From the sequence record PP777464.1: DNA of 64,000 bases. The stretch is one strand, 5' to 3'. The position numbers and the translations under genes are program-made. Under the pieces are notes generated by a model. That model was not told the DNA's origin and ran no database searches. It was given only the letters and a program-made list of their open reading frames with translations. Below are positions 9,419 through 61,744 of this stretch, piece after piece (the first letter of the stretch is position 1; the number at the start of each line of letters is the position of its first letter).

Positions 9419-9801
9419 TGAAATACTGCATTGAAGTACATTACACTACAGGTGATACTGAAAATTGTTATGACGTTCTTAATACAATTGATATTCAATG
9501 GTCTTCTAAAGAGGAAGCAGTTGCTGCTTTACAGTGCCTAAAAGAGCATTGGGTGTTTTATATGAAGCAAGATAATTGCTATACAAAAGAACACGAAACG
9601 ATCATGGAAAATGCTAAACAAAAAGAGTGGTTTGACCCAATATCACCAGCATATTCATTCTTGGTTAAAGTTGGTGATGTGACAGTTCCATTACGAACAC
9701 CGTGGAACGGCTACTTTGAAACTCTTCATAATGCACGAGTTGTCGCTGTTGATAACCCTGAACAAATCGATTTCGATTCATTGGACTGGAAAAAACTATG
9801 A
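9418..9801 (+). CDS. hypothetical protein
   Basis: Coupled ORF. Confidence 0.7.
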   Translation: MKYCIEVHYTTGDTENCYDVLNTIDIQWSSKEEAVAALQCLKEHWVFYMKQDNCYTKEHETIMENAKQKEWFDPISPAYSFLVKVGDVTVPLRTPWNGYFETLHNARVVAVDNPEQIDFDSLDWKKL

Positions 9802-10241
9802 CAGTACTGCACCGATTGAAGAAGGTTAAGCATCCAGTTGTATATGAGGACTGGAAACGACAGAAGTTGCTGGGTGATTTTTATTACCCAAAATCTAAAG
9901 TTCTTGCGAATTCAAGATGTACATATTGCACACATAATGATAAAGATACAGTATTTGTTGAAATGGGTTTCCATCCATCAAACACAATGTTCACTACTAA
10001 CCAAACGTTTTACAAATTTCATATACAAAAAGATTCATTTACTGTTATGATTATAAAACATTTAGTTGAAGATCTGGCATTCAGTGAAGAACGAGTACCT
10101 TTATCATTAGTGGATATTCCTTATAATAATTTAGAGGAAATGTACTTCCAACAGTTGACAGTACAAGAAAACTTTGGTATGATAGGACTTCAAGAGTTAG
10201 AGATGATTAAGCAAATTCGTGATATCTACTTTAAGGAGTAA
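9798..10241 (+). CDS. EExxFQxS family protein
   Basis: NLEEMYFQQLTVQEN. Confidence 0.75.
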   Translation: MTVLHRLKKVKHPVVYEDWKRQKLLGDFYYPKSKVLANSRCTYCTHNDKDTVFVEMGFHPSNTMFTTNQTFYKFHIQKDSFTVMIIKHLVEDLAFSEERVPLSLVDIPYNNLEEMYFQQLTVQENFGMIGLQELEMIKQIRDIYFKE

Positions 10242-10243
10242 CT

Positions 10244-10387
10244 ATGCCAGTACGTAACAGTACTTCACGCTTTACGCTTCAACAGAAAGCAGATCTTTTG
10301 AATATGGCAAACAAAGATTCTAATTTTCACTATCTAGTACTCGGTGGTTCAGTTGAAAAGATTGACCTACGTGAGTGTATGAAATAA
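10244..10387 (+). CDS. small hypothetical protein (47 aa)
   Basis: RBS AAGGAG; below ORF-track cutoff. Confidence 0.6.
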   Translation: MPVRNSTSRFTLQQKADLLNMANKDSNFHYLVLGGSVEKIDLRECMK

Positions 10388-10403
10388 CAAAAAGGGGACT
10401 AAA

Positions 10404-10574
10404 ATGAGTCTACGTGAATCATGGGAACAATTTAAAGAAGAGATTGGTTATCGTGGTGTCAAAATCGAACCAATCAATCGCACCGAAAGCATCAAAGCTA
10501 GTACTAATGGCACTACCTATGATCGTTATGATGAAAAGTATGGTTTACATTCTAAACCAAAGGATACTGAGTAA
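10404..10574 (+). CDS. small hypothetical protein (56 aa)
   Basis: RBS GGGGA. Confidence 0.6.
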   Translation: MSLRESWEQFKEEIGYRGVKIEPINRTESIKASTNGTTYDRYDEKYGLHSKPKDTE

Positions 10575-10717
10575 TGGTGTATACTAATATTTTTACTGGT
10601 ATTATGCGTAAGTTTGTTAATGGTATTGGATATGTATCCAATGACAACGGTAGTACATGGGTAAAAAATAATACGTCAGAATCTTTAGTGAAAAGTCTTC
10701 CGTATTATAAAGCTTGA
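10574..10717 (+). CDS. small hypothetical protein (47 aa)
   Basis: TAATG coupling. Confidence 0.5.
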   Translation: MVYTNIFTGIMRKFVNGIGYVSNDNGSTWVKNNTSESLVKSLPYYKA

Positions 10718-10747
10718 CACATGAAAATGGAGTATGTATAATACTCC
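10714..10747 (+). promoter_or_regulatory. sigma70 promoter with inverted repeat over -10
   Basis: TTGACA-N17-TATAAT; GGAGTAT-gtata-ATACTCC. Confidence 0.8.
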
Positions 10748-10774
10748 TATATTAATCAAATGAGGATATACGAA

Positions 10775-11347
10775 ATGGCTGGTGTTGATAAAATTTGTGA
10801 ATTCAGTGGCGATTATGAAGGTTACGAAATGTACAAGTCCAAGCGTAATCACATTCAAGTTCTGTCAAAGTACCGTAAAGAATTCCGAGGACACAAAGCA
10901 ACATTGTATGTTTTTGAGAATGGATATTCTGAAGTTTTCACAAGTGGTGGGTATAGTACAGCTAACATGGCACATATCAACCCAAACCCAACTGAAGATG
11001 ATTGGAATAGTGGTAACGCTTTTCGTATTTCAATTTTGAATAAAATGAATCGTTACGACCGTTATTGTACATTCTTTGAAAATATTTCAGAATACAAGCA
11101 AGCATTAAAGAAATATAATCAACGCTTACTAATGAATTATGATTACATTCTTCATGTTCCTACTGTTCCGGGTCAGGTTAATGGTCTGTACACAAATAGT
11201 TCTCATGATTTAACTGCTGTGAAGCGTCGCCTCAAACGTATGTTGGGTTGTGGTAATTTAACAATCAAGGTTATGCGTAATGAATCAATGTATAACTTTT
11301 TAGATGTACTACACTACACATTGAAGGATAATAATGGAAACGATTAA
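10775..11347 (+). CDS. hypothetical protein
   Basis: RBS GAGGA 8 nt before ATG 10775. Confidence 0.75.
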   Translation: MAGVDKICEFSGDYEGYEMYKSKRNHIQVLSKYRKEFRGHKATLYVFENGYSEVFTSGGYSTANMAHINPNPTEDDWNSGNAFRISILNKMNRYDRYCTFFENISEYKQALKKYNQRLLMNYDYILHVPTVPGQVNGLYTNSSHDLTAVKRRLKRMLGCGNLTIKVMRNESMYNFLDVLHYTLKDNNGND

Positions 11348-11531
11348 GTTTATGTTTGAGGTGTTTGTTGCATTCATCTTATGTACAGTGTCTATTGCTA
11401 TTGCTTTAATCCCAGTAATCGTTTACCAAGTTAATGGTGGCACAGATCCAACCGTTGATATGTTTCTTCGTTGTGTTGGATTCTGCATATGGTTGGCGAT
11501 GTTTATGTACTATATGCATCGTGAGGATTGA
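11334..11531 (+). CDS. small membrane protein (2 TM)
   Basis: Hydrophobic ORF, RBS AAGGA. Confidence 0.7.
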   Translation: METIKFMFEVFVAFILCTVSIAIALIPVIVYQVNGGTDPTVDMFLRCVGFCIWLAMFMYYMHRED

Positions 11532-12364
11532 TTATGTCATTGGAAAAAGTAATTATTTCTGAATTCCGAAAGTACATCATTGATTGTGATAGAGATACCC
11601 AGCGTAAGTTTAATGAGTATCTTGACAAATATCCATATTTGATGTTTAATCCATTTGAAACTCAATCCGATGTTAATCTTGGATTTTACATTGGGTTTAC
11701 ACAACGAATTCTACAACAATATGAGATGAAACAGCCAGAGGTTTGGGTAGAAACTGATTCGAATGAGACGAATGTTTTTTATCTGTACTCTTATTATGCG
11801 GAAATTGTTAGTTCAATGACGCTAGAAGGGTATCTATTCGTCAAAACATCTGATATTGAAAAAATATACATAGAACCTGTATCTTTGGATATGGTTGCCC
11901 AGCTTCCAACAGTCCAATATTTGGATGCAAATGAGTTGACATATTCGGTGTTTGAGTACCTTAACCGAGACGATTTAACTCAAGAAATTGAGAATATGGT
12001 TTCAAAATATACCACAACTCTTATATCTAATGGTTCACTTAGGATAGAACTGATTTACGACGATACTAGTACTAATGCAGTACGAGGAACTCGAATTGGA
12101 AAAGTTACTATACGTGTTGTCCACAATGATGTAGTACTTGGTTATATTTCGAAACGTGGTCATGACTTGTGTTTGATTAACACATATGTTATTGAACGAA
12201 AAGAATGGAACGATTTAATGCAAAAAATCGTAGACGGAAGTGGAATTCGTGATATAATGTGTAATGAGGTAGTGACAATTAATCCTGACATTGACTGTGA
12301 TGTATATTTCCCAGTTCCTGGATTTACTCTACGTAATTTTGGTACATTAAAGGGTACAAAATGA
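11528..12364 (+). CDS. hypothetical protein
   Basis: 278-aa ORF. Confidence 0.75.
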   Translation: MIMSLEKVIISEFRKYIIDCDRDTQRKFNEYLDKYPYLMFNPFETQSDVNLGFYIGFTQRILQQYEMKQPEVWVETDSNETNVFYLYSYYAEIVSSMTLEGYLFVKTSDIEKIYIEPVSLDMVAQLPTVQYLDANELTYSVFEYLNRDDLTQEIENMVSKYTTTLISNGSLRIELIYDDTSTNAVRGTRIGKVTIRVVHNDVVLGYISKRGHDLCLINTYVIERKEWNDLMQKIVDGSGIRDIMCNEVVTINPDIDCDVYFPVPGFTLRNFGTLKGTK

Positions 12365-12651
12365 AAATTTTAGAAGTCTTACTTGAAAAGGATGCATCTG
12401 GCACACTTTATGTTGGTAATGAGTTTAGTCCTGATCCAATTGATATGATGCAGCGTATTCAAACACTGACCCAATCAATTTCAGTTAAACAACCTTTCCT
12501 AAAAGAATTAGAAATTCACTGCGATAAAGATATGGAACAACATGATAATGTTATTTCTGATATCAAAAGTCTATTGACAAAGAATGGATATGTGGAGTAT
12601 AATCCTTCTATCGTAATCGTTATCCCTGACTTTATGAAAGGAACATTGTAA
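12361..12651 (+). CDS. hypothetical protein
   Basis: Coupled ORF. Confidence 0.7.
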   Translation: MKILEVLLEKDASGTLYVGNEFSPDPIDMMQRIQTLTQSISVKQPFLKELEIHCDKDMEQHDNVISDIKSLLTKNGYVEYNPSIVIVIPDFMKGTL

Positions 12652-12920
12652 TGACTAAAGAAGAAATGAAATCTCGCCTAAGCGAACTTAAGAAAGAACG
12701 AAAACTAGTCCGTTTGGACTGGGACATTCTTAACAAAAAAGATGAGCAATCATATGCTAACTGGAGTTCCGATAAAGTTCGCAATGACCGTTCCAAAGAA
12801 GACGCTAAACAGTTTATGGCATTGACCAAACGTTTATCTTCACTGAATAGTGAAATTACAGGTCTTCAAAAGGAAATTATTTCAATTCTTCAAGTGGAGA
12901 TCAACTCACTGTATGAATAA
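12651..12920 (+). CDS. coiled-coil hypothetical protein
   Basis: Heptad-rich charged sequence. Confidence 0.7.
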   Translation: MTKEEMKSRLSELKKERKLVRLDWDILNKKDEQSYANWSSDKVRNDRSKEDAKQFMALTKRLSSLNSEITGLQKEIISILQVEINSLYE

Positions 12921-13209
12921 ACATGAAGTGATTCATTTTGATGGTAAGATTTATGTACCAAACAATGATAGTACTGAATCTTATTATCTAATCAATGCAA
13001 TTATGTCAGAAACACAAACATGTTGCCGTCAGCGTCCAGGTGAGTATGAGTTCAGTCAGACCATTGGTTATTATCGTTATACTGAACTTGATAAATTTAC
13101 AATCGATTCTAAAAAAGTTATTGACGTTCTCACGAAGAACGGATATAATGAATCCGAATCAAACGAAACAGAGTTACCAGTCGTGAAATTTGTTCTAAAA
13201 AATAATTAA
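12913..13209 (+). CDS. hypothetical protein
   Basis: Start reassigned to ATG 12913. Confidence 0.65.
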   Translation: MNKHEVIHFDGKIYVPNNDSTESYYLINAIMSETQTCCRQRPGEYEFSQTIGYYRYTELDKFTIDSKKVIDVLTKNGYNESESNETELPVVKFVLKNN

Positions 13210-13326
13210 TTTTTTGGACAACGCTGAAAAGCATGATATAATGTATATTATCGGCAGATGTAAAAATGCAAACCATTCCTCAATGATGAGGGTTTTTCAT
13301 AAAAAAGAAATAAAAGGGTATTAAAA

Positions 13327-13536
13327 ATGGCTAAAGAAACTAACGCACAAGTACTAGATATCACCGACTTCGACCGCACTGTGAACTACATTCAGTTCCA
13401 GATTCATCAAGCTGAAGAAGCTCTCGCAGTATTCCACGGTACTGGTGCAAGGCCAATCCGTTTTGCTCATCTAATTGCATGGAAGAAAAGTCTACAAGAA
13501 GAACTTTCTGAACTGCGTAAAGCAAACCGTAAGTAA
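13327..13536 (+). CDS. hypothetical protein with own promoter and terminator
   Basis: Upstream TGA-TATAAT; downstream hairpin + T-run. Confidence 0.75.
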   Translation: MAKETNAQVLDITDFDRTVNYIQFQIHQAEEALAVFHGTGARPIRFAHLIAWKKSLQEELSELRKANRK

Positions 13537-13601
13537 TTGATTTCCCGCCTCATCAATGTTGATGGGGCTTTTTTAATAAAATACAAACTGAGGATATATT
13601 A

Positions 13602-14108
13602 ATGAGTGTTGAATATTGGTTTTTGTTTATATGTCTTGGTACACTAGTACTGATTACATTGGGCTTAATCTTCAATACGGTAATCAGTGGTAGTAATTAC
13701 TTCAAGTCCTTTCAACTTCTAATGTCAGCTATGCAGTACAGTGACGAGGCAGAAGAAACCACTACGTTGATTTTGAATAAACTTGAAGCTAACTTACTGG
13801 TTGCTAAAATTTCTTCGTGTAATACAAATATTGTATTTTATGCATCACCCGTGGACCTTAATGGGTACGAAATGAGTTACCAGCCAGCCGTTGCTGAAAT
13901 TTTTATTGGTTCTAAGTATTATGCATATGGATATATCCGAAAGTATTATACTGAAGCAAAAGCCGAGCTAACAAAGAAACGACCGTCAATTAAGACATTA
14001 AAGCGTATCATCGCACTAGAAAAGAAACTACGAGGTGACGTGACAAAAAATGATTCACCCACTGTAGTAAATACAAAGAAAAAAAATAACGTAGTGGAGT
14101 TGGATTAA
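13602..14108 (+). CDS. membrane-anchored hypothetical protein
   Basis: N-terminal TM; RBS GAGGA. Confidence 0.75.
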   Translation: MSVEYWFLFICLGTLVLITLGLIFNTVISGSNYFKSFQLLMSAMQYSDEAEETTTLILNKLEANLLVAKISSCNTNIVFYASPVDLNGYEMSYQPAVAEIFIGSKYYAYGYIRKYYTEAKAELTKKRPSIKTLKRIIALEKKLRGDVTKNDSPTVVNTKKKNNVVELD

Positions 14109-14413
14109 TGGACGCAGATAAATCAAACAGTATTCTTATTGATGTACAAACGAAGTTATTAGATGTTATGGAAATCATCAAAGATTTACCACAAGGATAT
14201 CAGTTTAAAGTTCGTGAAATGTTATCTTGTGCAGAAACTGTTGTGTCTATGTACAATGATGTGCAGCATGGAATTATCCCTGAAATTCTTCAAGATGGTC
14301 TAAATATTAACACAAAGATTCCAGCACAAGAGCCTGAAGAGGTTGTTCAGTCTGAACCAGAACCTCCCATACGTAAAGTACTGGATCTGTCTGGCATCAA
14401 AATTAACATCTAA
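14108..14413 (+). CDS. hypothetical protein
   Basis: TAATG coupling. Confidence 0.7.
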   Translation: MDADKSNSILIDVQTKLLDVMEIIKDLPQGYQFKVREMLSCAETVVSMYNDVQHGIIPEILQDGLNINTKIPAQEPEEVVQSEPEPPIRKVLDLSGIKINI

Positions 14414-14435
14414 AATACATTCAATAGGAGAAGTA

Positions 14436-14585
14436 ATGAGTAATCAAAAAATCGACTTAGTAGTAAAACTTCAAGAGATTCAAGCACTAGCTAAAGAACT
14501 TGATGAAAAACGTGCAGCAGCAGTTGATTCACTGTGTGCAACAATTCTGACTGTTTTTGCAGATTACGAAAAGAAATCTGATTAA
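14436..14585 (+). CDS. small helical protein (49 aa)
   Basis: RBS AGGAG before ATG 14436. Confidence 0.65.
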   Translation: MSNQKIDLVVKLQEIQALAKELDEKRAAAVDSLCATILTVFADYEKKSD

Positions 14586-14595
14586 ACATTACTTT

Positions 14596-14625
14596 ATGCC
14601 CAGTCTAGTACTGGGTATTTTTTTA
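14596..14625 (+). terminator. intrinsic terminator containing AGTACT
   Basis: tgcccagt-ctagt-actgggta+TTTTTT. Confidence 0.7.
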
Positions 14626-14635
14626 AGGAAATAAA

Positions 14636-15028
14636 ATGACTGAATCTGAACTACGTGAAATGATAGATTTCATTTATGAAATGGTACAAGATAAAAATAA
14701 CATCAATACAATTGCATCTGGTCCAAGACAAATTGGTAACCAAATAACATATTCTTTGTCCTTATGGTTACACCCGTGCATTAAGGTTGATTGTTTGTAT
14801 TTCCGTCCTGATATTGATGCTTATTATTTTGTCAATCATGATGCATTAATGAAACCAAATAAGCGTCCAGTTGATGATGCCTTTGTGACGCACCCATTTT
14901 ATCTGGCTGATTCCGAAGAAGATGAGTTTCAAAAGAACACAACGTTAAGCCCAGGTGAAATTTGCATCCCTTATGAACTAAAAGATAAAATGATTTACAT
15001 CACAGAAGTTATGAAAACATGCTGGTAA
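14636..15028 (+). CDS. EExxFQxS family protein (divergent)
   Basis: SEEDEFQKNTTL. Confidence 0.7.
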   Translation: MTESELREMIDFIYEMVQDKNNINTIASGPRQIGNQITYSLSLWLHPCIKVDCLYFRPDIDAYYFVNHDALMKPNKRPVDDAFVTHPFYLADSEEDEFQKNTTLSPGEICIPYELKDKMIYITEVMKTCW

Positions 15029-15075
15029 GTGCAATGAAACTCTGATATAATACTATGACTTACTAAGGAGAACAT

Positions 15076-15645
15076 ATGCACTTTATTAAATTCAACTCAT
15101 CTGAGTCAGAAGCATACTTTAATACAAATAATAAATTTAATATTATTCTTAAAGACGGAACGGTTGTTATCGGAGTATCATTGCTTTCATTTGATGGCGA
15201 AAAACTCAAAACTGTTTATAAATTCACCAATCTTGATGGTGATTACTGGGATACGTCAGATGTATCTAAAATTTGCACACATTATGTATTTGAATCTATT
15301 GAAGTTGGTGATGGCTGGGCATTGACCTGTAATGGTAATAAAGTATTTTCTGGTAACATATTTGGGGTAATTTCCAGTAAAGAAATCGTAGACCATCATC
15401 TTCATGTTCTCAATAATAACGCCAACACTTATACACCTGATAATATCAAAATTCACGATATTGTAACATATACTGATTATAATGGTTTCAGACATAAAGC
15501 AATTGTAACTGAAGTTAAAAAACCAAAAAATTATTTCGACCACGGTTTAATTGAAGTATATATGGTAGGTGGAGAAAAACAATACTTTGATCATTTCACT
15601 TATACTGGTTGGGATAGATTCCTAACCGTTGTTGAGGAATACTAA
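15076..15645 (+). CDS. hypothetical protein
   Basis: RBS AAGGAG; upstream TATAAT. Confidence 0.75.
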   Translation: MHFIKFNSSESEAYFNTNNKFNIILKDGTVVIGVSLLSFDGEKLKTVYKFTNLDGDYWDTSDVSKICTHYVFESIEVGDGWALTCNGNKVFSGNIFGVISSKEIVDHHLHVLNNNANTYTPDNIKIHDIVTYTDYNGFRHKAIVTEVKKPKNYFDHGLIEVYMVGGEKQYFDHFTYTGWDRFLTVVEEY

Positions 15646-15646
15646 C

Positions 15647-16135
15647 ATGCCGATTCGTGGTGTACCAGAACCATTAATGGAAGTTATTAAGCATGTTCGC
15701 ATTGGAGATCGAGAAGTTAATCTGCGACGTGGTAATATATATTACTTTAAAACTTCAGAAATGAGTTCTGTGCAGATTGTCATTGGTACATCTATTATGA
15801 TTACTCGCGTACTTGATGGTAGTACTGACTTCGTTGGATACAATGTACTTACTAATAAAGTAACACATACATATAAATGGAGTGGATATAAAACTATTAA
15901 GTACGAGTTTGACTTAGCTAGAACTGAAGAAGAACGATTTATGCTGAGTACTATCAATCCAGCAAACTATCCAGATCTTGATGCATTTTTGCTAATTTTA
16001 AAATTGTATAATGAAGCAAATCAGAAAGCTAAAGAGTATGATAGAATCATGTATGAACGCCGAAAAGAACGTGCACAAAAAAGTTATGATCTGTATGATA
16101 GCCCATACGTGAAATATAGTAAGGGGTCGAAATGA
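15647..16135 (+). CDS. EExxFQxS family protein
   Basis: RTEEERFMLSTIN; RBS GAGGA. Confidence 0.75.
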   Translation: MPIRGVPEPLMEVIKHVRIGDREVNLRRGNIYYFKTSEMSSVQIVIGTSIMITRVLDGSTDFVGYNVLTNKVTHTYKWSGYKTIKYEFDLARTEEERFMLSTINPANYPDLDAFLLILKLYNEANQKAKEYDRIMYERRKERAQKSYDLYDSPYVKYSKGSK

Positions 16136-16536
16136 ATAAAGAAGTTCAAATTATCATAACTCCACCTATACAAAGTCTGGATGTATCCATTAGTGATTTT
16201 TTGGAAAAATACTATGAATGGTTTAATGAAGATTCAGTAATTTATAACCATTCATTACCTGATGGTTTCGTTGAGCTTATTGAATTAAATGCCAAATCAC
16301 TATACTTCTGTGTTGAATACAATGATTATATGACAGATGAAGCATATCGTTTTCGTTGTACATTGTATCCTAACCATTTTTCCATTGGTTATAAAGACTA
16401 TCAGTACTGCACCACAAACTATAGTGTAGAGGAAGAATTTCAGTACAATTTACTTTATCCTGATTTAGATTATACGATTGCAGTACTGTTGACTAAAATC
16501 ATGGATTTTTATAAAGATAAATATAATGCAGCCTAA
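16132..16536 (+). CDS. EExxFQxS family protein
   Basis: SVEEEFQYNLLYPD. Confidence 0.7.
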   Translation: MNKEVQIIITPPIQSLDVSISDFLEKYYEWFNEDSVIYNHSLPDGFVELIELNAKSLYFCVEYNDYMTDEAYRFRCTLYPNHFSIGYKDYQYCTTNYSVEEEFQYNLLYPDLDYTIAVLLTKIMDFYKDKYNAA

Positions 16537-16711
16537 GACATTTGATGAGTGGTTTAATCTACACTATAATATAAATGCAGCAGATATATACTATTTTAAG
16601 CTTGAATTGTATATATCATTGCGTAACCCAATCGAGTACTATAACAACATCATCAATTGTGATGATTTTGGTACATATTTTAGTATAGCAGTCATGGACA
16701 AAATAAGATGA
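16526..16711 (+). CDS. small protein, distant MTHEEW family member
   Basis: KTFDEWFN N-terminus. Confidence 0.6.
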   Translation: MQPKTFDEWFNLHYNINAADIYYFKLELYISLRNPIEYYNNIINCDDFGTYFSIAVMDKIR

Positions 16712-16878
16712 CACACAAAGAATGGTTAGATGAACTAAAATTTAAACATAATCCTTTTGGTTTTGGTATACGCCAAGGTCATTATGATGTGTTAAAAGAT
16801 AAACAACTTTTCAAATCATTTGTACTTGATGAGGATAGTAATCACTGGTACATCTATGAGCTTGCAATTAGGAAATAG
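16708..16878 (+). CDS. MTHEEW family microprotein (56 aa)
   Basis: MTHKEWLDELKFKHNPF...; ATGA coupling. Confidence 0.65.
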   Translation: MTHKEWLDELKFKHNPFGFGIRQGHYDVLKDKQLFKSFVLDEDSNHWYIYELAIRK

Positions 16879-16888
16879 AAGATATAGT

Positions 16889-17242
<354 letters not shown>

Positions 17243-17250
17243 AATCCAAA

Positions 17251-17448
17251 GTGACTAAAGCAGAACTTGTAGCATTATTGGAATCATATCCCGATGATGC
17301 ATGTATTGAAGTTGTTCATAGTGCGAGACATTTTGACATTGAAGATGTAGTACGTTATAATGACAAAGGTGTACTCATCATGGAACTATGTATTGGTGAA
17401 ATGAAAACTGTACCCGAATCAGAAAAACGTAAAAATAGTAAACCGTAA
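17251..17448 (+). CDS. hypothetical protein
   Basis: GTG start, RBS GAGGA; N-terminus similar to 20887 and 21301. Confidence 0.7.
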   Translation: MTKAELVALLESYPDDACIEVVHSARHFDIEDVVRYNDKGVLIMELCIGEMKTVPESEKRKNSKP

Positions 17449-17458
17449 GGAAAATAAA

Positions 17459-17677
17459 ATGGAATCTACTCTATTAGAAGTTATTAACTCATTAAACGCT
17501 GGTGACAATGTACAAGTACTCCTTCAGGGATACCGTGTAAAAGGTTCAGTAGTTTTAGTTAATGACACCACTGTTGTTGTAACTGAAACTAACCCGTTTG
17601 ACAGTAATGAACTTGCTAATATCCATATTGATATTAAAAGTATTATTGGTGTTGGTGTAACTAAACCACAAGAATAA
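17459..17677 (+). CDS. small beta-barrel (Sm/SH3-like pattern) hypothetical protein
   Basis: RBS AAGGA; alternating beta pattern GDNVQVLL...KGSVVLVND. Confidence 0.6.
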   Translation: MESTLLEVINSLNAGDNVQVLLQGYRVKGSVVLVNDTTVVVTETNPFDSNELANIHIDIKSIIGVGVTKPQE

Positions 17678-17698
17678 CAATTGTTATTGGGGATTACT

Positions 17699-17971
17699 AT
17701 GCATTTTGAAAAATTCAATACAAATCGTAACACACGCATTGACGTTCTTTATGAAACACAAGACTCAATAAGCATTCGTACACGTAGTGGTGATGTATAT
17801 CATGACTGTACTATTGGTTGGGAACAGGGAAGAACACGTAGTGCAAAATTCGATAACTATCGCTTCTACCAAGGGGACACCACAATCTGGCCTGAAGATG
17901 TAGAAGATATTGCGTTTGAAGATGAACATAAAGATGAATTTATAAAATTTAATCCCGAAACCGAATCATAA
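17699..17971 (+). CDS. hypothetical protein
   Basis: RBS GGGGA. Confidence 0.7.
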   Translation: MHFEKFNTNRNTRIDVLYETQDSISIRTRSGDVYHDCTIGWEQGRTRSAKFDNYRFYQGDTTIWPEDVEDIAFEDEHKDEFIKFNPETES

Positions 17972-17988
17972 ATATTGGAACAGACAAT

Positions 17989-18104
<116 letters not shown>

Positions 18105-18108
18105 AAAT

Positions 18109-18194
<86 letters not shown>

Positions 18195-18211
18195 CAATTA
18201 AAGGTTAAACC

Positions 18212-18372
<161 letters not shown>

Positions 18373-18376
<4 letters not shown>

Positions 18377-18533
18377 CACATGAAGAATGGATGAATGACA
18401 TTAATTTTAGATATTCGGGTATCGGTAAATGGCTAAAGTATCATTGGGAATTCATTTCAGAGCCGCATCTGTATGATAAACTTATCAACGATCCAGCATA
18501 TGAAATGTACTTAATTGAACTACTGGTACGAAT

Positions 18534-18537
<4 letters not shown>
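18373..18537 (+). CDS. MTHEEW family microprotein (54 aa)
   Basis: Recent paralogue of 18212; ATGA coupling. Confidence 0.7.
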
Positions 18538-18706
<169 letters not shown>

Positions 18707-18708
18707 AG

Positions 18709-19134
<426 letters not shown>

Positions 19135-19189
19135 CTAAATAGTTCAGTACCAAGGAGATTAATATGTTTAAAGATGAACGTCCAGATTT

Positions 19190-19230
<41 letters not shown>

Positions 19231-19236
19231 GAATTC

Positions 19237-19575
19237 CACAATCAGACGTATATGGTGTAAGTTACGTCGATGCAATCCAGAACAAGATCTCTGGTACTCT
19301 AGGAAGTGGTGAATGTTAACCTAGACGGGTTTGATAATTGGACGATAGGCAATTATTACTTGACTAGCAGGTTTAAACTAGAGGTGACTATCCTTCACCA
19401 AACTGGAAAACCGGATGGACTTTTATTTAAAAGGGTAAGGCGTGGAAATATGTTTACAGTAGTTGCTTTTAGTAGCCTGTACGCCCCACGTCAAGGTAGC
19501 CGAAAGGCAAGTTAAAACGGGTGGTTATAAAGCTTAATTAACAGCGGCGTTTAAAAGCGTCACCATCCATTTTTT
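19237..19575 (+). ncRNA. candidate structured ncRNA (~330 nt)
   Basis: Own promoter, many hairpins and long-range helices, T-run end, no convincing ORF. Confidence 0.5.
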
Positions 19576-19592
19576 TAATTAAAGTTGGTGAT

Positions 19593-20412
<820 letters not shown>

Positions 20413-20425
20413 ATAGGAAATTAAA

Positions 20426-20611
20426 ATGCAACTTTTAATTCTTTCAATATTGTATATTATTATAATGGTTCCGATATCAATACGTTTAATTACAGTTGAA
20501 CGATTTTTATCGAAACATGGAAATAGATCTATGATCTTTGTACCAATCGGGTTGATATTGTTTGGTATATTTTCATTTATAATGGGAATTAACGCTACAT
20601 TCATTTCATAG
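20426..20611 (+). CDS. small membrane protein (2 TM)
   Basis: Hydrophobic; RBS AGGA. Confidence 0.7.
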   Translation: MQLLILSILYIIIMVPISIRLITVERFLSKHGNRSMIFVPIGLILFGIFSFIMGINATFIS

Positions 20612-20620
20612 GAAACAAAT

Positions 20621-20878
<258 letters not shown>

Positions 20879-20886
20879 GAATTTAA

Positions 20887-21288
20887 ATGAAAAAGAATGA
20901 CTTGATCAAAATGCTTCAAGAGATTGACGGCAATCCAGAGATTGTTATTTGGAATGGATATGTCGATGATTATATGAACATCGAAAAAGGCTTGACTAAA
21001 ATCACTCTAGTCAAAGAAACTGAACAGTTCCTTCTGGAAGCATTAGTGCACGAATGGTGCAAACGTAACAATACATTCGACATTCCAGAAGATCAACGAA
21101 CTAAGATTGCAGAACAAGCTAAAAAACTTCATAAGAAACGTGAATACGATTTCCAGAACCCACATGTTACTGAAGACGAATTCAATCACTGGTACGGTAA
21201 AAAGAAATTGACAAAATATGTCATTTCACCTAAACTACGTGGTAAGACTTCACTTGGTGTCTTCAACGCCGCTGACTTAAACTACTAG
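20887..21288 (+). CDS. hypothetical protein
   Basis: MKKNDLIKMLQ N-terminus. Confidence 0.75.
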   Translation: MKKNDLIKMLQEIDGNPEIVIWNGYVDDYMNIEKGLTKITLVKETEQFLLEALVHEWCKRNNTFDIPEDQRTKIAEQAKKLHKKREYDFQNPHVTEDEFNHWYGKKKLTKYVISPKLRGKTSLGVFNAADLNY

Positions 21289-21297
21289 CGGGTATTA

Positions 21298-21847
<550 letters not shown>

Positions 21848-21849
21848 TA

Positions 21850-22052
<203 letters not shown>

Positions 22053-22103
22053 GCCTCCCCTCAATGCGAAAGAGTATAGAGACTTGTTGGTTATCTTACT
22101 TCT

Positions 22104-22186
<83 letters not shown>

Positions 22187-22189
22187 TCA

Positions 22190-22265
<76 letters not shown>

Positions 22266-33202: not shown

Positions 33203-34171
33203 GTGAAAAAGCTTGATTTAAATGCAATTTCTGAAGAAGTACTGGATGAGTGTTTTGCTAGTGAAGAAGTCAACGTATTAGAGGCTCTTGATTCCGTCGA
33301 AGAAGAAGAAGAACATGACGGTCACAAGTTTGAGAAACCAAAAACAGGTATCAGCTTAACTCGCCCTAAAGGGATAACGAATGAAATGCTCATCCAAGCA
33401 GTGCGTGATGGTATTGACGTTGAAAAGAACATTGACCTTTTGGTTCGCTACAACTATCCAATGGTAGTAAGTGTTGCACGTAAGTGTACATGTTTTATCC
33501 CATTTGAAGATAAGATTTCTTATGGTGTTGAAGGTTTAATGCGAGCAATTCATACGTTCGACACTACCAAAAATGTTAAGTTCATTACATATGCAACAAC
33601 AACTGTGTACATGACAATCTATAACGAAAGTGCAGATGCTAATTATCTAGTGCATTTCCCACGTTATATGAGTGTTAATAACATTTATGTGAAACGTTGT
33701 GTAGAAGAGTATCAAAGGAAACATGGTAAATACCCAACTCCTGAGATGGTGTCAAAAGAGACTGGTATTGAGATTCAACACGTTAAGAATTGTCTAACTT
33801 ACAATAACACTTATGTAGCATTGAATATGAAAATGAGTAATGATTCAGAAAGTACATTATCTGACATTGTTACTTCAGTTGAACCTGATTACAACTTAGG
33901 CGTAGAAACTGTCAGTACCCCACTGGTACAAAGTATTGCAGAAATGATGAGTAACCTATCTGCCAAAGACCGTGAATTGATTGAACGTGTACATGGTATT
34001 GGTTCTTATTCTGAACCAGAAACGCTACGAGAAATCATTGAGAGTGGTTTTGAAGATGAGAAGGGTAAGGTCATGACTGCTCGTTCTTCATTGCACCGTA
34101 AGTACTCTGAAGCAATGGAACGACTGCGTAAGATGGTTAAGACAAAAGGTTATGAGTTCGAAGATTTTTAA
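33203..34171 (+). CDS. sigma70-family RNA polymerase sigma factor
   Basis: Region 2 (YPMVVSVARK...GVEGLMRAIHTFDTTKNVKFITYAT), region 3 (KYPTPEMVSKETGI), region 4 (LSAKDRELIERVHGI). Confidence 0.85.
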   Translation: MKKLDLNAISEEVLDECFASEEVNVLEALDSVEEEEEHDGHKFEKPKTGISLTRPKGITNEMLIQAVRDGIDVEKNIDLLVRYNYPMVVSVARKCTCFIPFEDKISYGVEGLMRAIHTFDTTKNVKFITYATTTVYMTIYNESADANYLVHFPRYMSVNNIYVKRCVEEYQRKHGKYPTPEMVSKETGIEIQHVKNCLTYNNTYVALNMKMSNDSESTLSDIVTSVEPDYNLGVETVSTPLVQSIAEMMSNLSAKDRELIERVHGIGSYSEPETLREIIESGFEDEKGKVMTARSSLHRKYSEAMERLRKMVKTKGYEFEDF

Positions 34172-34175
34172 GATT

Positions 34176-34204
34176 AAAGGGTTGACTTCGGTCAGCCTTT
34201 TTTT
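34176..34204 (+). terminator. GGTTGAC-TTCG-GTCARCC terminator cassette
   Basis: UUCG hairpin + T-run. Confidence 0.9.
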
Positions 34205-34240
34205 ATGGGACAAATTTATTAATGGTGATACAATGATCTA

Positions 34241-34715
34241 TGTACAATCACAATGACAGTACTGGTACTGACAATCTTCCCCTACTTCACTTGAAAATGT
34301 AAAGGATAGATGAGCTTTTCATTGTAGCGAACAGCAAAAGAAACCCGTTAGATGTGGGCATAGTTTGAACCCCTCACGGCAATGCGGCTGTATAAAGAAC
34401 CACGTTAGGATAGCTGGTGGTTCCTCGATAGACATATAAGGATAACACCTTACGAATTATCTAAGGGAGAGTTATCGAATTTTGTACAGGAAAGTTGCGT
34501 CCAAAATTTGAGTACTCACATTAAGTATTTGATTGCATAGATACTTAATGAAGATACACTATGTTTAAAAGTGTAGACCGTCATATGAAACTGAAGTAGA
34601 GAGAAACAGGATGACCCGCTTTCGCACTCGTTATGAGTAATCTTCAATGCAATAGCTCTGATACCATCAGCGTCAAATTTCCCTCCGTGCGGGGGGGAAG
34701 AAAAATCCCTTCCTC
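34241..34715 (+). ncRNA. candidate large structured ncRNA (~470 nt)
   Basis: 660-nt gap with no ORF >=60 aa; extended -10 TGA-TACAAT upstream; many helices. Confidence 0.5.
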
Positions 34716-34739
34716 AAATCCCGTCAATATTAAAAGTCC

Positions 34740-34768
34740 TTGACAGTTATGATTCATTCGCGTAGAAT
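34740..34768 (+). promoter_or_regulatory. sigma70 promoter
   Basis: TTGACA-N17-TAGAAT. Confidence 0.8.
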
Positions 34769-34832
34769 ACGTAGTATTAGAAGCGAACAGACATCTCGAA
34801 GAGATGGATGATTAACCACTAAGGAATATCTA

Positions 34833-35042
34833 ATGAATTCAGTAATCTTTTTAATTATTGCTCTTTCACCACAATCTGGTGTACAAATCACCCCAATGAA
34901 TTCAATGAATCAATGCATTGCAGTACGTGACAGTACGTATGAACAAGTAAACAGCGTTTCACTTAGAACAGTTGGTGAAGAATTAATGTGGTGTTACAAT
35001 AGTAATACTAAAGAAAAACTAATTGTTGGACAAACAGAATGA
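34833..35042 (+). CDS. small protein with hydrophobic N-terminus
   Basis: RBS AAGGA; two Cys. Confidence 0.65.
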   Translation: MNSVIFLIIALSPQSGVQITPMNSMNQCIAVRDSTYEQVNSVSLRTVGEELMWCYNSNTKEKLIVGQTE

Positions 35043-35267: not shown

Positions 35268-36062
35268 ATGAGCACTATAGATGAATTGATTCGCCGGAAT
35301 TCAAAATACTACGACCCATCAGAAATTGTCGGCAACATTACTAAATCTGAGTTCGGACCAAATACTCGAAAACTCATTCATGTAATGTCACGTGATGGCT
35401 TTAAATGTGATTGTTGTGGTGAATCCAATGTGGTATTCACTTTACATAAGCACAGTACTAAAGACCGTTATAAATTCAGACCTTATGTACTTAAAGGGAA
35501 ACGCCTTGTACGCATGACGTTAGACCATAATGTACTGGACTGTCTTCAGGGCGGTAATGATAAAGAGAACATGACTGCATTGTGTGAGGATTGTAACGCA
35601 TTACGCCAGCATAAGTTTGCTGAGTACAGTGAGTTTAAGCACTGGTATCATAACGCTGATCGTTCTATCGAGCCTGACGTTAACTACTGCTTCATTGAGT
35701 ATATTAAGAATGCTAAAGATACATACATTCTTAAATCAATGTCACCTATTACAGTGTTCCCTGAGAATCTATTCAGTACTATGCAGCGTGATTTTAAACG
35801 TGGTATCATTAATGCATTCAAACATTTAGACAAAGGTATCAAGCACTTTGAGGTGCAATGCTTAAATGAAGGAATGAATCGTTTAGTACAAATTTACATG
35901 AAATCATTTATAGGTGTTGACACCGCACGTCTACCAGTATATAATTACTTTATTGAAAGCGAAGAAGGTGAATCTCTTCGTGATTATGGTGAAAGATTTA
36001 ATAACAAAGTCTTCGCTGCAATATCAAACGAGATTCATTACTATAAACCATATGTAATTTAA
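35268..36062 (+). CDS. HNH endonuclease domain protein
   Basis: RDGFKCDCCG...TLDH...GGNDKENMTALCEDCN; RBS GGAG. Confidence 0.75.
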   Translation: MSTIDELIRRNSKYYDPSEIVGNITKSEFGPNTRKLIHVMSRDGFKCDCCGESNVVFTLHKHSTKDRYKFRPYVLKGKRLVRMTLDHNVLDCLQGGNDKENMTALCEDCNALRQHKFAEYSEFKHWYHNADRSIEPDVNYCFIEYIKNAKDTYILKSMSPITVFPENLFSTMQRDFKRGIINAFKHLDKGIKHFEVQCLNEGMNRLVQIYMKSFIGVDTARLPVYNYFIESEEGESLRDYGERFNNKVFAAISNEIHYYKPYVI

Positions 36063-57520: not shown

Positions 57521-58645
57521 TTAATTATCTAAGCCACCAATTACACTGAACTGTGTGGTAACGTCTGAACTATTATCTATGTAAGTTCTTCTACCAACAT
57601 AATATAGTTGTCCTTTTGCTTGAATAAAAGTTACGGTCCCTGTATTGAATGTTATAATATCATTGTATGTAATGTCAGGTGGTAGTGCTGCTGATAACGC
57701 AGTAACTTTACTTAATGCAGCACTAGTACTACCATTTATACCAGCAGCAATACTACCAGTACCATAGAACTTATTATCTTTACCAATGAATACGTTGGCT
57801 GATGCTTGTGTAGCTGATGTTATTGCCTTACCAATTTGGAATGCGGTTCCTATGGTGTATGGTGTGCTCCTGGCTGCGTCTATGCTTTGTGTATATCCAT
57901 CCCCTAGCTGACCATTAACTTTGTCACCACATGAGTATAGAGTACCATTGAGGCTGTATATGATCCCACGGTTAGAGAAGCTAACAGCTTCTGCATTAGT
58001 CCATACTGGTGCGGTGTATGAGTTTACACGACTAGCGGTAGTTCCTAGACCTAGTATACCATATGTGTTATCACCACATCCAAACCATTGTCCAGAACTG
58101 TTTTGATAGAACACTGAACGTTCTGTTGATTCCATGCGTACAGCATCCACAGCACCACTTTTAACGAACGAAGTTGATGAGGATGTAGTACCAGTACCCA
58201 ATGCACCATAAGTGTTTGTACCAATCGCATAGATTGATCCTAGTGGTGTCATAACACGTATGCAGTTATATCCCAATTGAACTTTACATTCAAATAGGTT
58301 GTCCCATATTTCAGGAACAGCAGAAAATAAATTTGTAATTTCGAACCATGATGTTGTCGAATCAGTTAATCCAATACTGCTTTTGTTTCCTAAAATGAAA
58401 ACAGTTTTGTCCTTCTTAATTATCCATGATGATAGGAAACCTATCTCACAGCTATGAACATTTGATTCTATTTGGGTAATATAATACTTAACTGTGTTAT
58501 CACCCATGAATGCCGCAGCACCGGATGCAAAAAGGTTTCCAGTTTGTTTATTTAAAATGTAGTTATTGTTTCCATATACACTAACATCATAAGAACTTTC
58601 TTGTTTTTCGTTCCCATAATCAAATAACAATACGAAAGGTAACAT
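57521..58645 (-). CDS. RCC1/BLIP-II-like beta-propeller protein (MLPF family)
   Basis: Repeats G.N.YG.LG.G; N-term MLPFVLLFDYGN. Confidence 0.8.
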   Translation of the reverse strand: MLPFVLLFDYGNEKQESSYDVSVYGNNNYILNKQTGNLFASGAAAFMGDNTVKYYITQIESNVHSCEIGFLSSWIIKKDKTVFILGNKSSIGLTDSTTSWFEITNLFSAVPEIWDNLFECKVQLGYNCIRVMTPLGSIYAIGTNTYGALGTGTTSSSTSFVKSGAVDAVRMESTERSVFYQNSSGQWFGCGDNTYGILGLGTTASRVNSYTAPVWTNAEAVSFSNRGIIYSLNGTLYSCGDKVNGQLGDGYTQSIDAARSTPYTIGTAFQIGKAITSATQASANVFIGKDNKFYGTGSIAAGINGSTSAALSKVTALSAALPPDITYNDIITFNTGTVTFIQAKGQLYYVGRRTYIDNSSDVTTQFSVIGGLDN

Positions 58646-58661
58646 GATAAAATCTCCTTGT

Positions 58662-58676
58662 GTTATACTTTATTTA
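58662..58676 (-). promoter_or_regulatory. putative late promoter TAAATA-N3-TATAAC
   Basis: Motif shared with other minus-strand genes. Confidence 0.6.
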
Positions 58677-58722
58677 ATCATTTTATAATGTACAATTTTA
58701 CAGCGATTTAATTGAGGTACTC

Positions 58723-59373
58723 ATGAATAAAAGAAGTAAGTTCTATCAAGAATATTTCACTAAACAGAAACGATTCACAAAAAAATACTTTACATCATCC
58801 CACCGACCAGTTGCAAGTTACAAACGTCCTAATACTAACTATCTTACTGGTGGCAAGTTTAGTGCAAAGTTCGAATTACTTATGCGTGAAAAGAATATCA
58901 AGATGCATTACGCAGAGACGAGAAAAAACTCATCAATTATTTGTTCTGATTTTCTTGAGTACGGTTGTTTAACTTATAAATTCAACGATGTATATTTGTA
59001 TATTGATGTTGATTGTAACAGTACTCGTATGTTTGAGATTTCAATTCACCCAAATCACAACCGTTATATAAACATTAACTTGGTTGATAAAGTACTGATT
59101 GGTATATCTAGTACTGATGGTGGTGGATTTGAATTTATTGCTTCAAAATATGATGAGGACTTTGTACTGTTCCCAGTACTTGATGATGTGAAAGATATTC
59201 TCAATTCATTAAAAGGAAGTCAATACAAATTATCTGAAGAACAGCTATTTCAGTACTCACTTATTCATGATGATATCGAGATATACTTAGAGTGTGCGAG
59301 AATATTGGAGTATCTTTATAATGAACTAACAACAACTGGTAAAGTGACAGCATTCACATTATATAATATGTAA
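58723..59373 (+). CDS. EExxFQxS family protein
   Basis: LSEEQLFQYSLIHDD; RBS GAGG. Confidence 0.8.
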   Translation: MNKRSKFYQEYFTKQKRFTKKYFTSSHRPVASYKRPNTNYLTGGKFSAKFELLMREKNIKMHYAETRKNSSIICSDFLEYGCLTYKFNDVYLYIDVDCNSTRMFEISIHPNHNRYININLVDKVLIGISSTDGGGFEFIASKYDEDFVLFPVLDDVKDILNSLKGSQYKLSEEQLFQYSLIHDDIEIYLECARILEYLYNELTTTGKVTAFTLYNM

Positions 59374-59375
59374 AA

Positions 59376-59403
59376 GAAAAGCCAGTACATAGTACTGGCA
59401 TTA
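59376..59403. terminator. terminator between convergent genes
   Basis: aaaagaaaa-GCCAGTAC-ata-GTACTGGC. Confidence 0.75.
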
Positions 59404-59405
59404 TA

Positions 59406-60542
59406 TTAAACTGGTGGAGAATTATATGGCTCAAATTTATAAGTTGTCGTAGCAGTACCAGCAATGGCGTTGTTAGCTAGTATGTACATAGTCCTGTAGT
59501 CGATTACCACTACAGTAATACTACCACCAAAAGCATAGTCTGTTATGTTATTAGTGTTGAATGGTAAATTAGATGAACTGGTCCATGTATTAGCTGTTGT
59601 GCTATTTGTACCATTGGAATAACCTACACTAGATGCACCAGTTGTCCATAAGTTTCCATCATTGAACAAGGAGACATGGTTAGTTGTATATGATTTATTA
59701 GGTATAGAACTATCAATTGGTGTATTCCAAACTTTAGTAACCCATGTTGTAACTGCTGTATTATTAGTAACGCCATTACCTAATGAACCATTTATTGGTA
59801 TACCTCTTATATAAGAAGTGTTAGTACTAGGGTCAACATATCCAAATGTATATGTATCAAATGCAAATTGAAAACAATCAGAACTCGGTAATGTGTACAG
59901 TAATGTATATGAAGACGTGTTTATTGATGAATTTGTACCGTTCACGCCTTGGTATAAAATACCACTAGCCAATATTTGATTATTATTTTTTGTTATAGTG
60001 TTCATTGATGGATATGTTTTCACATCACGCACATCATTAGTCACATATGTTTGTGTTGATAATGCAACGTTACTACCATTACCTATAACCCCTGTATTTG
60101 CACCACTCCCATAAAGTGAACCATCATTCAAAAGAACCATTGTAACATTACCATTTCCCGTAATTGTTTTAATATTACTAACATCCACCGCAGCAAATAC
60201 AGTTGATGTTAAATCAGTGAAACGTGTATAATGTGATGTTGTGCCATTGATTGGTGTCGCAAAACCAGAATACAAAATTCTATTTTCTTTGGTAATAAGG
60301 AATGTGCCAGTAACACCATTTGAATGGATATCAACAATATTATCGCCCATTAATACCCAATCACTTACGAATGTTGTTGTACCAGTACCCAACCCATATG
60401 TCGTATTGTATCCACGTCCATACACTCTACCATCACTGAGTAATGTTACCACACATTGACCACCACCACCAAGGATAACTTTTTGGATAGTACTCTTTAC
60501 TTTTATATTCCCGTACTTAACCATTCTTGCAAAAGGTAACAT
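59406..60542 (-). CDS. RCC1-like beta-propeller protein (MLPF family)
   Basis: MLPFARMVKYGN; GRVYGRGYNTTYGLGTG. Confidence 0.8.
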   Translation of the reverse strand: MLPFARMVKYGNIKVKSTIQKVILGGGGQCVVTLLSDGRVYGRGYNTTYGLGTGTTTFVSDWVLMGDNIVDIHSNGVTGTFLITKENRILYSGFATPINGTTSHYTRFTDLTSTVFAAVDVSNIKTITGNGNVTMVLLNDGSLYGSGANTGVIGNGSNVALSTQTYVTNDVRDVKTYPSMNTITKNNNQILASGILYQGVNGTNSSINTSSYTLLYTLPSSDCFQFAFDTYTFGYVDPSTNTSYIRGIPINGSLGNGVTNNTAVTTWVTKVWNTPIDSSIPNKSYTTNHVSLFNDGNLWTTGASSVGYSNGTNSTTANTWTSSSNLPFNTNNITDYAFGGSITVVVIDYRTMYILANNAIAGTATTTYKFEPYNSPPV

Positions 60543-60556
60543 TCTTTTTCTCCTTG

Positions 60557-61705
60557 TTATATTGATGGCATATCCAACACATATGAGTTGCTAGTGATTG
60601 ATGAATATGTAGAATTTAAACCTGTACTATAAACATAATCACCTGCCCATAAGAATGTTCTATCCAATGTTGTATGTATTTCAATATCATCATATGATGA
60701 TAATGATATTTGTGCCAGTGTATATGTAGTAGCATCAATGTTTGAACCAATACCCAAAGTACCATTGTATTGTGATTGGGAGTTTTGACCAGTTGCATAT
60801 ATACCAGATTTGGTTATTAAATGCTGATTGTACATTGACGTACCTTTAAACAATTTAATTAAATTAGAGTTGGGTGTTGTTATTTGTGCAGGAGCAAGTA
60901 TTGTTGTTGTAGTGCCACCATCACCCAATTGACCATATCGTTGGTAACCACCAGCGTATACCTGTTTAACTCCAGCAGTAGTTTCTATAATAAAGAATGA
61001 ACCATAGCCAGTAGTATTAAAGTCTATTATTTTATTTGTACTCAAACCAACATTATATCTAGTAAATGTTGTTGCATTTGCTGAACCACCAGCATTCCCA
61101 CCGACCATTTGACCACTATAATAAAATGCACCAGTACTGTCAGTATAAGCCATACAGTTTTCACTACCATATATTTTCACTGGTGTACTGGGGAAACTAG
61201 AGGTTATATTCACACATGTATTATATTTTGCAGTAGTTCCAGTAATTTCACCATTGTTGTTTTGACCAATGACCCAAACTGTGTCATCTGAACGTATAGC
61301 CATTGAGCTATAAAACGAGGATACAAATTGTTTAATAAAGGAACCAGGGAGAGAAGTAAGCATACTATTGATTTGTGCACTCACATTGGTCCATGTATTC
61401 ACAACTGAATTGACACCTGCTGCTGCACCGGAACCAGAACTCCACCATGATTCATCATTCTTTTTAATCAATGTACCGTTAGCAGAGCAATAAACATCAG
61501 CAACTGAACTATTAACTAATATCCATTCCCTCGCTGCTGTTGTATTACCAGTACCTAGCTGTCCTGCTGCATTACTACCCTTAGCATATAAATCGCCATT
61601 CTGCGTTAAAAGCATAGTATGTTGGTATCCAGTTGACAATTTCTTTATTTTTGGTAATGCTGGTGCTTCATTTCCATAATCAAACATTCTAACAAAAGGT
61701 AACAT
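60557..61705 (-). CDS. RCC1-like beta-propeller protein (MLPF family)
   Basis: MLPFVRMFDYGN; GDLYAKGSNAAGQLGTG. Confidence 0.85.
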   Translation of the reverse strand: MLPFVRMFDYGNEAPALPKIKKLSTGYQHTMLLTQNGDLYAKGSNAAGQLGTGNTTAAREWILVNSSVADVYCSANGTLIKKNDESWWSSGSGAAAGVNSVVNTWTNVSAQINSMLTSLPGSFIKQFVSSFYSSMAIRSDDTVWVIGQNNNGEITGTTAKYNTCVNITSSFPSTPVKIYGSENCMAYTDSTGAFYYSGQMVGGNAGGSANATTFTRYNVGLSTNKIIDFNTTGYGSFFIIETTAGVKQVYAGGYQRYGQLGDGGTTTTILAPAQITTPNSNLIKLFKGTSMYNQHLITKSGIYATGQNSQSQYNGTLGIGSNIDATTYTLAQISLSSYDDIEIHTTLDRTFLWAGDYVYSTGLNSTYSSITSNSYVLDMPSI

Positions 61706-61722
61706 AATTCCCTCCTTTATTC

Positions 61723-61737
61723 ATTATACTATATTTA
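61723..61737 (-). promoter_or_regulatory. putative late promoter TAAATA-N3-TATAAT
   Basis: Followed by RBS AAGGAGG. Confidence 0.6.
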
Positions 61738-61744
61738 ATCAAAA

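Follow-up and report, generated by a model that had tools for sequence, protein, structure and literature searches.

What occupies the long ORF-free gap that follows the sigma factor gene of Escherichia phage fEgEco12? We addressed this question in a 64,000-nt stretch (hereafter, the window) of its 374,733-bp genome (PP777464.1). A sequence-only reading of the window had picked out 34241-34715 as a structured region of ~470 nt and inferred a large novel non-coding RNA, possibly acting with the adjacent atypical sigma factor in a 6S-like manner, or else a replication origin. As described below, the structured region that it noticed is real, and window 34241-34727 (+ strand) is a complete gene for a ~490-nt structured non-coding RNA whose family is missing from Rfam 15 and unreported in the papers we searched. 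The interpretation is only partly supported: the evidence for a large novel non-coding RNA is strong, a link to the sigma factor is not supported, and a replication origin is neither shown nor excluded.

We first examined the boundaries of the gap. The upstream ORF (33203-34171) has sigma-70 regions 2 and 3, and the gap (34172-34832) contains no ORF of 60 codons or more. Although it had been called the largest ORF-free gap in the window, at a 60-aa threshold it is the second largest, after 17972-18768. That longer gap holds a tRNA-Ser (18015-18104), part of a cluster of six tRNA genes (Ser-TGA, Ser-GCT, Met, Asn and two adjacent Thr-TGT; 18015-22263), but about 660 nt of it are unexplained; neither it nor another long ORF-free stretch at 10242-10759 contains a copy of this RNA family. 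The gap opens with the intrinsic terminator of the sigma gene (34180-34204, +), which has a 7-bp stem (34180-34186/34191-34197), a UUCG loop and a T7 run (34198-34204) and is not part of the RNA. BLAST of the gap against the window finds the same terminator sequence at seven other places. The terminator plus the start of the following promoter (…CCTTTTTTTATGGGACA) recurs at seven or more other places, near 42280, 45890, 46677, 48254, 48938, 53554 and 54143 (each about 30-50 nt), which suggests a repeated terminator-promoter cassette. The promoter of the RNA gene follows at once (34207-34234, +), with GGGACA at 34207-34212, a 16-nt spacer and the extended -10 TGaTACAAT at 34226-34234, as the sequence-only reading had noted; the inferred start is near 34241. 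A second promoter match, TTGACA-17-TAGAAT, lies at 34740-34768, where that reading had placed the next promoter.

Folding of the single sequence is not distinctive (z-scores of -1.5 and -2.1 for the two strands), and a tRNA/tmRNA scan finds nothing in the gap. A search of Rfam had been named in advance as a check on the RNA, and no family matched. Of the 4227 models of Rfam 15, which include 6S, RNase P, tmRNA, group I/II introns, GOLLD, ROOL, OLE, raiA and HEARO, only tRNAs reach gathering scores in the window; in 34100-34900, up to E = 10, there are only chance-level hits of 9-18 bits, and no hit falls on six other copies, for seven copies in all. The evidence that the region is more than chance therefore comes entirely from comparison of homologues.

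The 701 bases around the gap are 100% identical to the fEgEco12 record and about 90% identical to 121Q, PBECO4, phAPEC6 and other Asteriusvirus jumbo phages. Using blastn, we found the 34280-34737 core at about 70% identity in Mimasvirus (CBB, GAP32, XbC2), Eneladusvirus (BF, fHe-Yen9-04, pEa_SNUABM phages), 7t3/Munch, Kaldavass and others, with several matching places per genome. Two pattern scans of IMG/VR built on invariant blocks returned 20 and 57 loci, with 4 copies in 121Q and CBB, 5 in GAP32, BF and fHe-Yen9-04, and at least 2 in RaK2. The family thus occurs 4-5 times per genome in Rak2-like jumbo phages. In fEgEco12 itself four dispersed copies start at genome positions 59873, 110627, 195732 and 307117, all on the + strand; by nhmmer the window holds only one, and BLAST of the gap against the window found only the repeated terminator. 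Paralogues are about 70% identical to each other, and orthologues keep their positions across genera. In 121Q-type phages the RNA is about 96% identical while the 701-nt interval including flanks is about 90%, which points to selection on the RNA.

Nearly every one of 59 distinct full-length copies is preceded by a -35-like TGAAAC/GGGACA/TGGAAC, about 15-17 nt and TGnTATAAT at the same place, and many copies then have a short 5' hairpin. Covariation had likewise been named beforehand as a test, and here the outcome is clear. We aligned 25, then 59 and 89 copies. RNAalifold on 25 copies predicts 76 pairs, 46 of them with compensatory changes. A curated fold of 103 pairs in 19 helices, including three pseudoknots, counted on the same alignment, is 89.8% paired, compared to 34-42% for slid controls; 74 pairs change on both sides, compared to 20-27; and the covariation score is 0.481, compared to 0.06-0.10. 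None of 500 shuffles reaches any of these three values. A fourth pseudoknot, not counted in this fold, also covaries. G-U cells outnumber A-C cells 117 to 35, so the + strand is the RNA.

The 5' domain (34250-34328) contains P1 (ACAATGA/TCATTGT), the P2 hairpin (34257-34270), the P3 hairpin with a conserved GAAAAUGUA loop (34282-34309), the invariant GAUGAG, and PK1, in which GCT (34314-16) pairs with AGC (34326-28) and crosses P1. These four helices are 86-100% paired, and 19 of their 23 pairs change on both sides. In 34331-34423, P4 (ACAGC/GCTGT) encloses the invariant CCGT/ACGG helix and a variable insert, and is followed by the P5 hairpin GAACCAC/GTGGTTC, in which 7 of 7 pairs change on both sides. 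The P6 hairpin (TAAGG/CCTTA; 34437-34476) is flanked by the invariant GATAGACATAT and TAAGGGAG, and its loop GATAAC (34441-46) pairs with GTTATC (34471-76) to form the fourth pseudoknot, PK4, for which more than ten different complementary variants are seen. P9 (GAGT/ACTC; 34469-34517) encloses the P10 hairpin AATTTTG/CAAAATT, which has a conserved 17-nt loop (ACAAUAUAGAUCCGUCC). This module sits after P6 in most copies but inside P16 in others (alignment columns 318-345 versus 470-510), and in both places in one copy, which is the behavior of a peripheral docking element in a globular RNA.

The pseudoknotted core follows (34519-34653). It contains the P11 hairpin (34519-34550), whose loop ATTGCAT pairs with ATGCAAT at 34647-53, about 110 nt downstream (PK3); the P12 hairpin (34555-34575); PK2 (GTCAT 34580-84 with ATGAC 34611-15), which crosses P14 and P15; P14 (TGAAG/CTTCA); P15 (GAGAG/CTTTC); and P16 (ACTC/GAGT). 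Invariant GACCGT, GAAAC and ACCCGC lie within it. Helices 12-18 are 84-100% paired, with PK2 and PK3 100% and 95% paired and 3 and 5 of their pairs changing on both sides, and an independent helix search on 59 sequences agrees.

Of the ten helices proposed from the sequence alone, seven are supported by covariation: GAACCAC/GTGGTTC, AATTTTG/CAAAATT, CATTAAGTAT/ATACTTAATG, TACACT/AGTGTA, GTCAT/ATGAC (a pseudoknot), ACTC/GAGT, and GATAAC/GTTATC (a pseudoknot formed by a hairpin loop). TACAAT/ATTGTA is right for the 3' strand only, the conserved partner being ACAATGA at 34250-34256. TGAAAA/TTTTCA and GAAGAT/ATCTTC are not supported; CTTCA at 34642-34646 pairs instead with TGAAG at 34592-34596. 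We also rejected the long-range GAC/GTC and GGG/CYC pairs predicted by RNAalifold, because they show no double changes and the Serratia copy with CGACA in both 3' repeats contradicts them.

Could the element instead be a coding region or an intron? Only one 43-codon ORF (minus strand) lies within it, with two more of 41-45 codons at the edges of the gap, and substitutions follow base-pairing rather than codon structure. The short 'hypothetical proteins' annotated over it in several GenBank records differ from record to record and are probably spurious. A group I intron would be inserted in a gene with flanking exons and would have the P3-P8/P7 core, whereas this element is intergenic with its own promoter and has no Rfam hit.

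Synteny with the sigma gene had been put forward as a test of the 6S-like proposal. In Asteriusvirus, one of the four copies directly follows the sigma gene, but the other three lie in unrelated contexts, and the copies looked at in four other genera are not next to a sigma gene; those in Mimasvirus and Eneladusvirus lie among hypothetical genes. The bacterial elements described below show no sigma gene near it. 6S RNA is an abundant RNA of ~180 nt made from a sigma-70 promoter, and its fold is a rod with a large central bubble, while the fold supported here is branched and pseudoknotted, and the Rfam search of the region up to E = 10 listed no 6S match. Binding to the sigma-70 holoenzyme and templating of product RNAs were not assayed, but a 6S-like role, in which the RNA would bind RNA polymerase holoenzyme or the phage sigma factor encoded next door, is the least likely reading that we considered. 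No shared partner protein was found: the 264-aa ORF downstream (35268-36062, +), which has CxxC…DH…N…CxxC spacing typical of HNH nucleases but no Pfam hit, is not similar to the ~267-aa gene that follows the element in CBB, and Pfam found nothing shared.

A cis-acting leader (riboswitch, attenuator or processive antiterminator) is also unlikely. In its favor, the element sits just after a strong promoter; 38 of 58 copies carry a terminator-like hairpin plus U run inside the conserved region, followed by more conserved sequence, which resembles an expression platform; and the window copy has no terminator before the next genes. However, the genes downstream differ between paralogues and genera rather than belonging to one gene or pathway. 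In Salmonella phage 7t3 both annotated neighbors are on the opposite strand, and in four bacterial elements the nearest large ORF beyond the 3' end of the RNA points towards it, so there it cannot be a leader. Several copies, including that of the window, have a separate promoter match right after the element.

These four bacterial elements came from a scan of one genome per bacterial species, which found four full-length copies. In the Serratia fonticola GTA-SR07 chromosome, the copy sits beside a large serine recombinase and two ParB/RepB-like genes, at the edge of an insertion next to a duplicated rof; the two tandem rof genes (4775-5490 of the extracted locus) flank the end of the integrated element, which looks like a target duplication made by integration. 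In Serratia sp. 2723 it follows a serine recombinase next to core genes, in Silvania hatchlandensis it lies between a CI-like repressor and a serine recombinase, and in an Enterobacteriaceae MAG it lies beside a CI-like repressor. Two of 5426 complete E. coli genomes carry it. In strain LR-29-1 the copy lies in a 1.4-kb ORF-free stretch of a ~10-kb island inserted next to ffs, between ffs and ybaA (9755-20650 of the extracted locus), and has a jumbo-phage-style promoter and an internal terminator-like hairpin. The island also carries a short (109-aa) tyrosine-integrase ORF beside an IS3 transposase, DUF4326, DUF488, a dual-OB protein and a small serine recombinase, and could be a satellite-like element. 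The family is absent from PLSDB plasmids, in the phage collection it occurs only in jumbo phages, and a metagenome scan returned 72 more loci.

The 3' tail holds a feature that we cannot explain. After the core comes R1 (ATCAGCGTCAA; 34666-34676), with the motif A-Y-S-A-N-Y-K-W-C-A-R. In 38 of 58 copies a terminator-like hairpin with U5-9 follows, but the window copy has none. Next is a hairpin made of a C-rich strand and an invariant G5-7 run (34681-34697, the G7 run at 34691-34697), a segment proposed from the sequence alone to form a pseudoknot or terminator; it is helix 19 of our fold and shows only G-C/G-U alternation and no double changes. After an A-rich linker comes R2 (ATCCCGTCAA; 34718-34727), the same motif minus one A and the last conserved block, with conservation ending within about 3 nt. 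In 87 of 87 sequences R1 and R2 carry the same letter at five variable positions: Y2 (U/U 52, C/C 35), S3 (C/C 84, G/G 3), Y6 (C/C 83, U/U 4), K7 (G/G 84, U/U 3) and W8 (U/U 86, A/A 1). At the final purine they agree in 79 of 87. Different paralogues of one genome can carry different variants, so a genome-wide trans factor cannot explain the rule. We looked for an RNA partner with a complement scan including flanks, averaged base-pair probabilities and local folds, and found no complementary RNA segment; R1 often closes a small local hairpin, but its register differs between classes, and R2 has no consistent partner. In a column-association scan no other column follows these positions, the best reaching 0.87 purity against 1.0. 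The repeat therefore co-varies as a repeat, not as a helix, which is what one expects if both copies must match a third sequence that is not a separate part of the RNA. The simplest candidate is the template DNA strand of the other copy.

An RNA-primed (R-loop) replication origin is the main rival, although we consider it a tentative one. In this view, host RNA polymerase would transcribe the structured RNA, and R1 in the RNA and/or the G run would hybridize with the template strand at R2 or the C run, nucleating a persistent RNA-DNA hybrid that is processed into a primer, while the AT-rich stretch and stable hairpins downstream would help unwinding and lagging-strand priming. This is the logic of ColE1 RNA II, in which a G-rich RNA segment pairs with non-adjacent template DNA, and of the T4 oriF/oriG origins, of which T4 has several dispersed; in these systems a promoter-driven transcript of some hundred nucleotides is followed by an origin. 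The template strand of R2 is the one sequence that is automatically complementary to R1. The invariant G run next to a C run, the four or five dispersed copies per genome, the 77% average A+T of the 40 nt after R2, and the location in long ORF-free stretches of integrated bacterial elements, once beside ParB/RepB-like genes, also fit, and the identical repeats, G run and dispersed copies are explained at least as well by this model as by our preferred one. So do hairpins with C(GNA)G triloops on the same strand, two of which follow the window copy (34766-34778 and 34792-34806). Similar hairpins (for example AATAC-GTA-GTATT, CATCTC-GAA-GAGATG, CTCAC-GGA-GTGAG, TTCAC-GAA-GTGAA) follow most phage copies and the copy in the E. 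coli island (about 14600-14720 of the extracted locus). In the window as a whole they are no more frequent than chance, and we neither assign them to the RNA nor exclude them from it.

On the other hand, four pseudoknots, a relocatable docking module and many invariant unpaired bases are far more structure than any known primer RNA needs, and the ColE1 and T4 RNAs are not known to have conserved pseudoknotted cores. The R1/R2 match is only 6-7 contiguous bases plus 3 more, with an extra A in R1 in every copy. There are no DnaA boxes, no replication gene is linked, and cumulative GC skew keeps rising steadily across the element; a change of sign near 58-60 kb (window about 58000-64000) is possibly a switch of gene orientation, which was not checked. 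The promoter required of a ColE1-type origin is present some hundred nucleotides upstream, and R1 = R2 and the G run would allow pairing with non-adjacent template DNA, but such pairing is only inferred, which leaves this criterion undecided. Initiation of DNA synthesis and RNase H processing were not measured, no antisense RNA I, RNase H site or replication data exist here, and an antisense promoter was not searched for. Taken furthest, the family would be a new kind of replication origin built around a globular RNA that stays attached to its own gene through R1 and R2, helped by the G run, and primes DNA synthesis there. Jumbo phages would carry four or five such origins and the integrated elements of Serratia, Silvania and E. 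coli one, perhaps so that a helper phage's replication machinery copies them. This is unlikely but not excluded, and it is equally unexcluded that the core is a new large ribozyme class.

It seems more likely, with a probability of roughly 0.5, that the RNA works as a free-standing, compactly folded molecule in the complexity class of ribozymes and large RNA scaffolds. We regard it as certain that this is a new, strongly constrained, independently transcribed structured RNA family. The analysis itself demonstrates the sigma-70-type extended -10 promoters in front of nearly all copies, the identity of the + strand as the RNA strand, and the capacity of the transcript to fold into at least 19 helices supported by covariation with four pseudoknots, many invariant unpaired bases and a peripheral module that occupies either of two sites. 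Beyond this we infer that host RNA polymerase makes the RNA at the start of infection, and that the RNA then acts through its own three-dimensional fold on something common to enterobacterial cells or their mobile elements, rather than through the neighboring sigma gene or as a leader for downstream genes. We also infer that the 3' tail is a functional part that sets the 3' end or a contact made by the tail, and that its two repeats must stay identical for a reason not yet known. Because no transcript, structure-probing, replication or genetic data were available for any member, the start, 3' end and abundance are inferences, as is every statement about function, and with no activity or partner identified, action in trans is an argument from complexity and context. 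Since the window copy has no terminator after R2 and a promoter-like site and genes follow on the same strand, read-through into them is possible. Nevertheless, the fold complexity, the invariant unpaired bases, the relocatable module, the lack of a fixed neighbor and the stand-alone orientation all point to a free-standing RNA.

Among known RNAs, GOLLD and ROOL, large structured RNAs associated with phages and prophages of Firmicutes and others, are similarly several hundred nucleotides long with many covarying helices and pseudoknots, are not tied to one protein gene, and have unknown function. There is no sequence or structure match to either, although both are in Rfam; the hosts differ (here, Enterobacterales and Xanthomonas phages), this family has 4-5 diverged paralogues per genome, and we know of no counterpart to its co-varying direct repeat. 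The Pseudomonas jumbo phage PA5oct, related to 121Q, RaK2 and GAP32, has four RNA-seq-defined, ORF-free, highly transcribed loci of 236-619 nt, ncRNA001-004 (PMC7318152). With nhmmer we found no similarity in the 16-kb stretch that holds ncRNA001 and ncRNA002; ncRNA003 and ncRNA004 were not examined. Full-text literature searches found no description of the family.

Large, intricately folded bacterial and phage RNAs are rare, and the known ones either proved to be central machines (RNase P, tmRNA, self-splicing introns) or are still open puzzles (OLE, GOLLD, ROOL, raiA). This family has a size and fold complexity in that range, and it occurs in cultivable E. coli phages (121Q, PBECO4, phAPEC6, fEgEco12) that infect laboratory strains, so it is directly testable. 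Two features are unusual: several diverged paralogues per genome, and a direct repeat that co-varies as a repeat rather than as a helix, which points to a mechanism not seen in catalogued RNA families. If the family marks replication origins, it would also give the first origin map for Rak2-like jumbo phages. Its presence in chromosomal islands and prophages hints at exchange, or parasitism, between those elements and jumbo phages.
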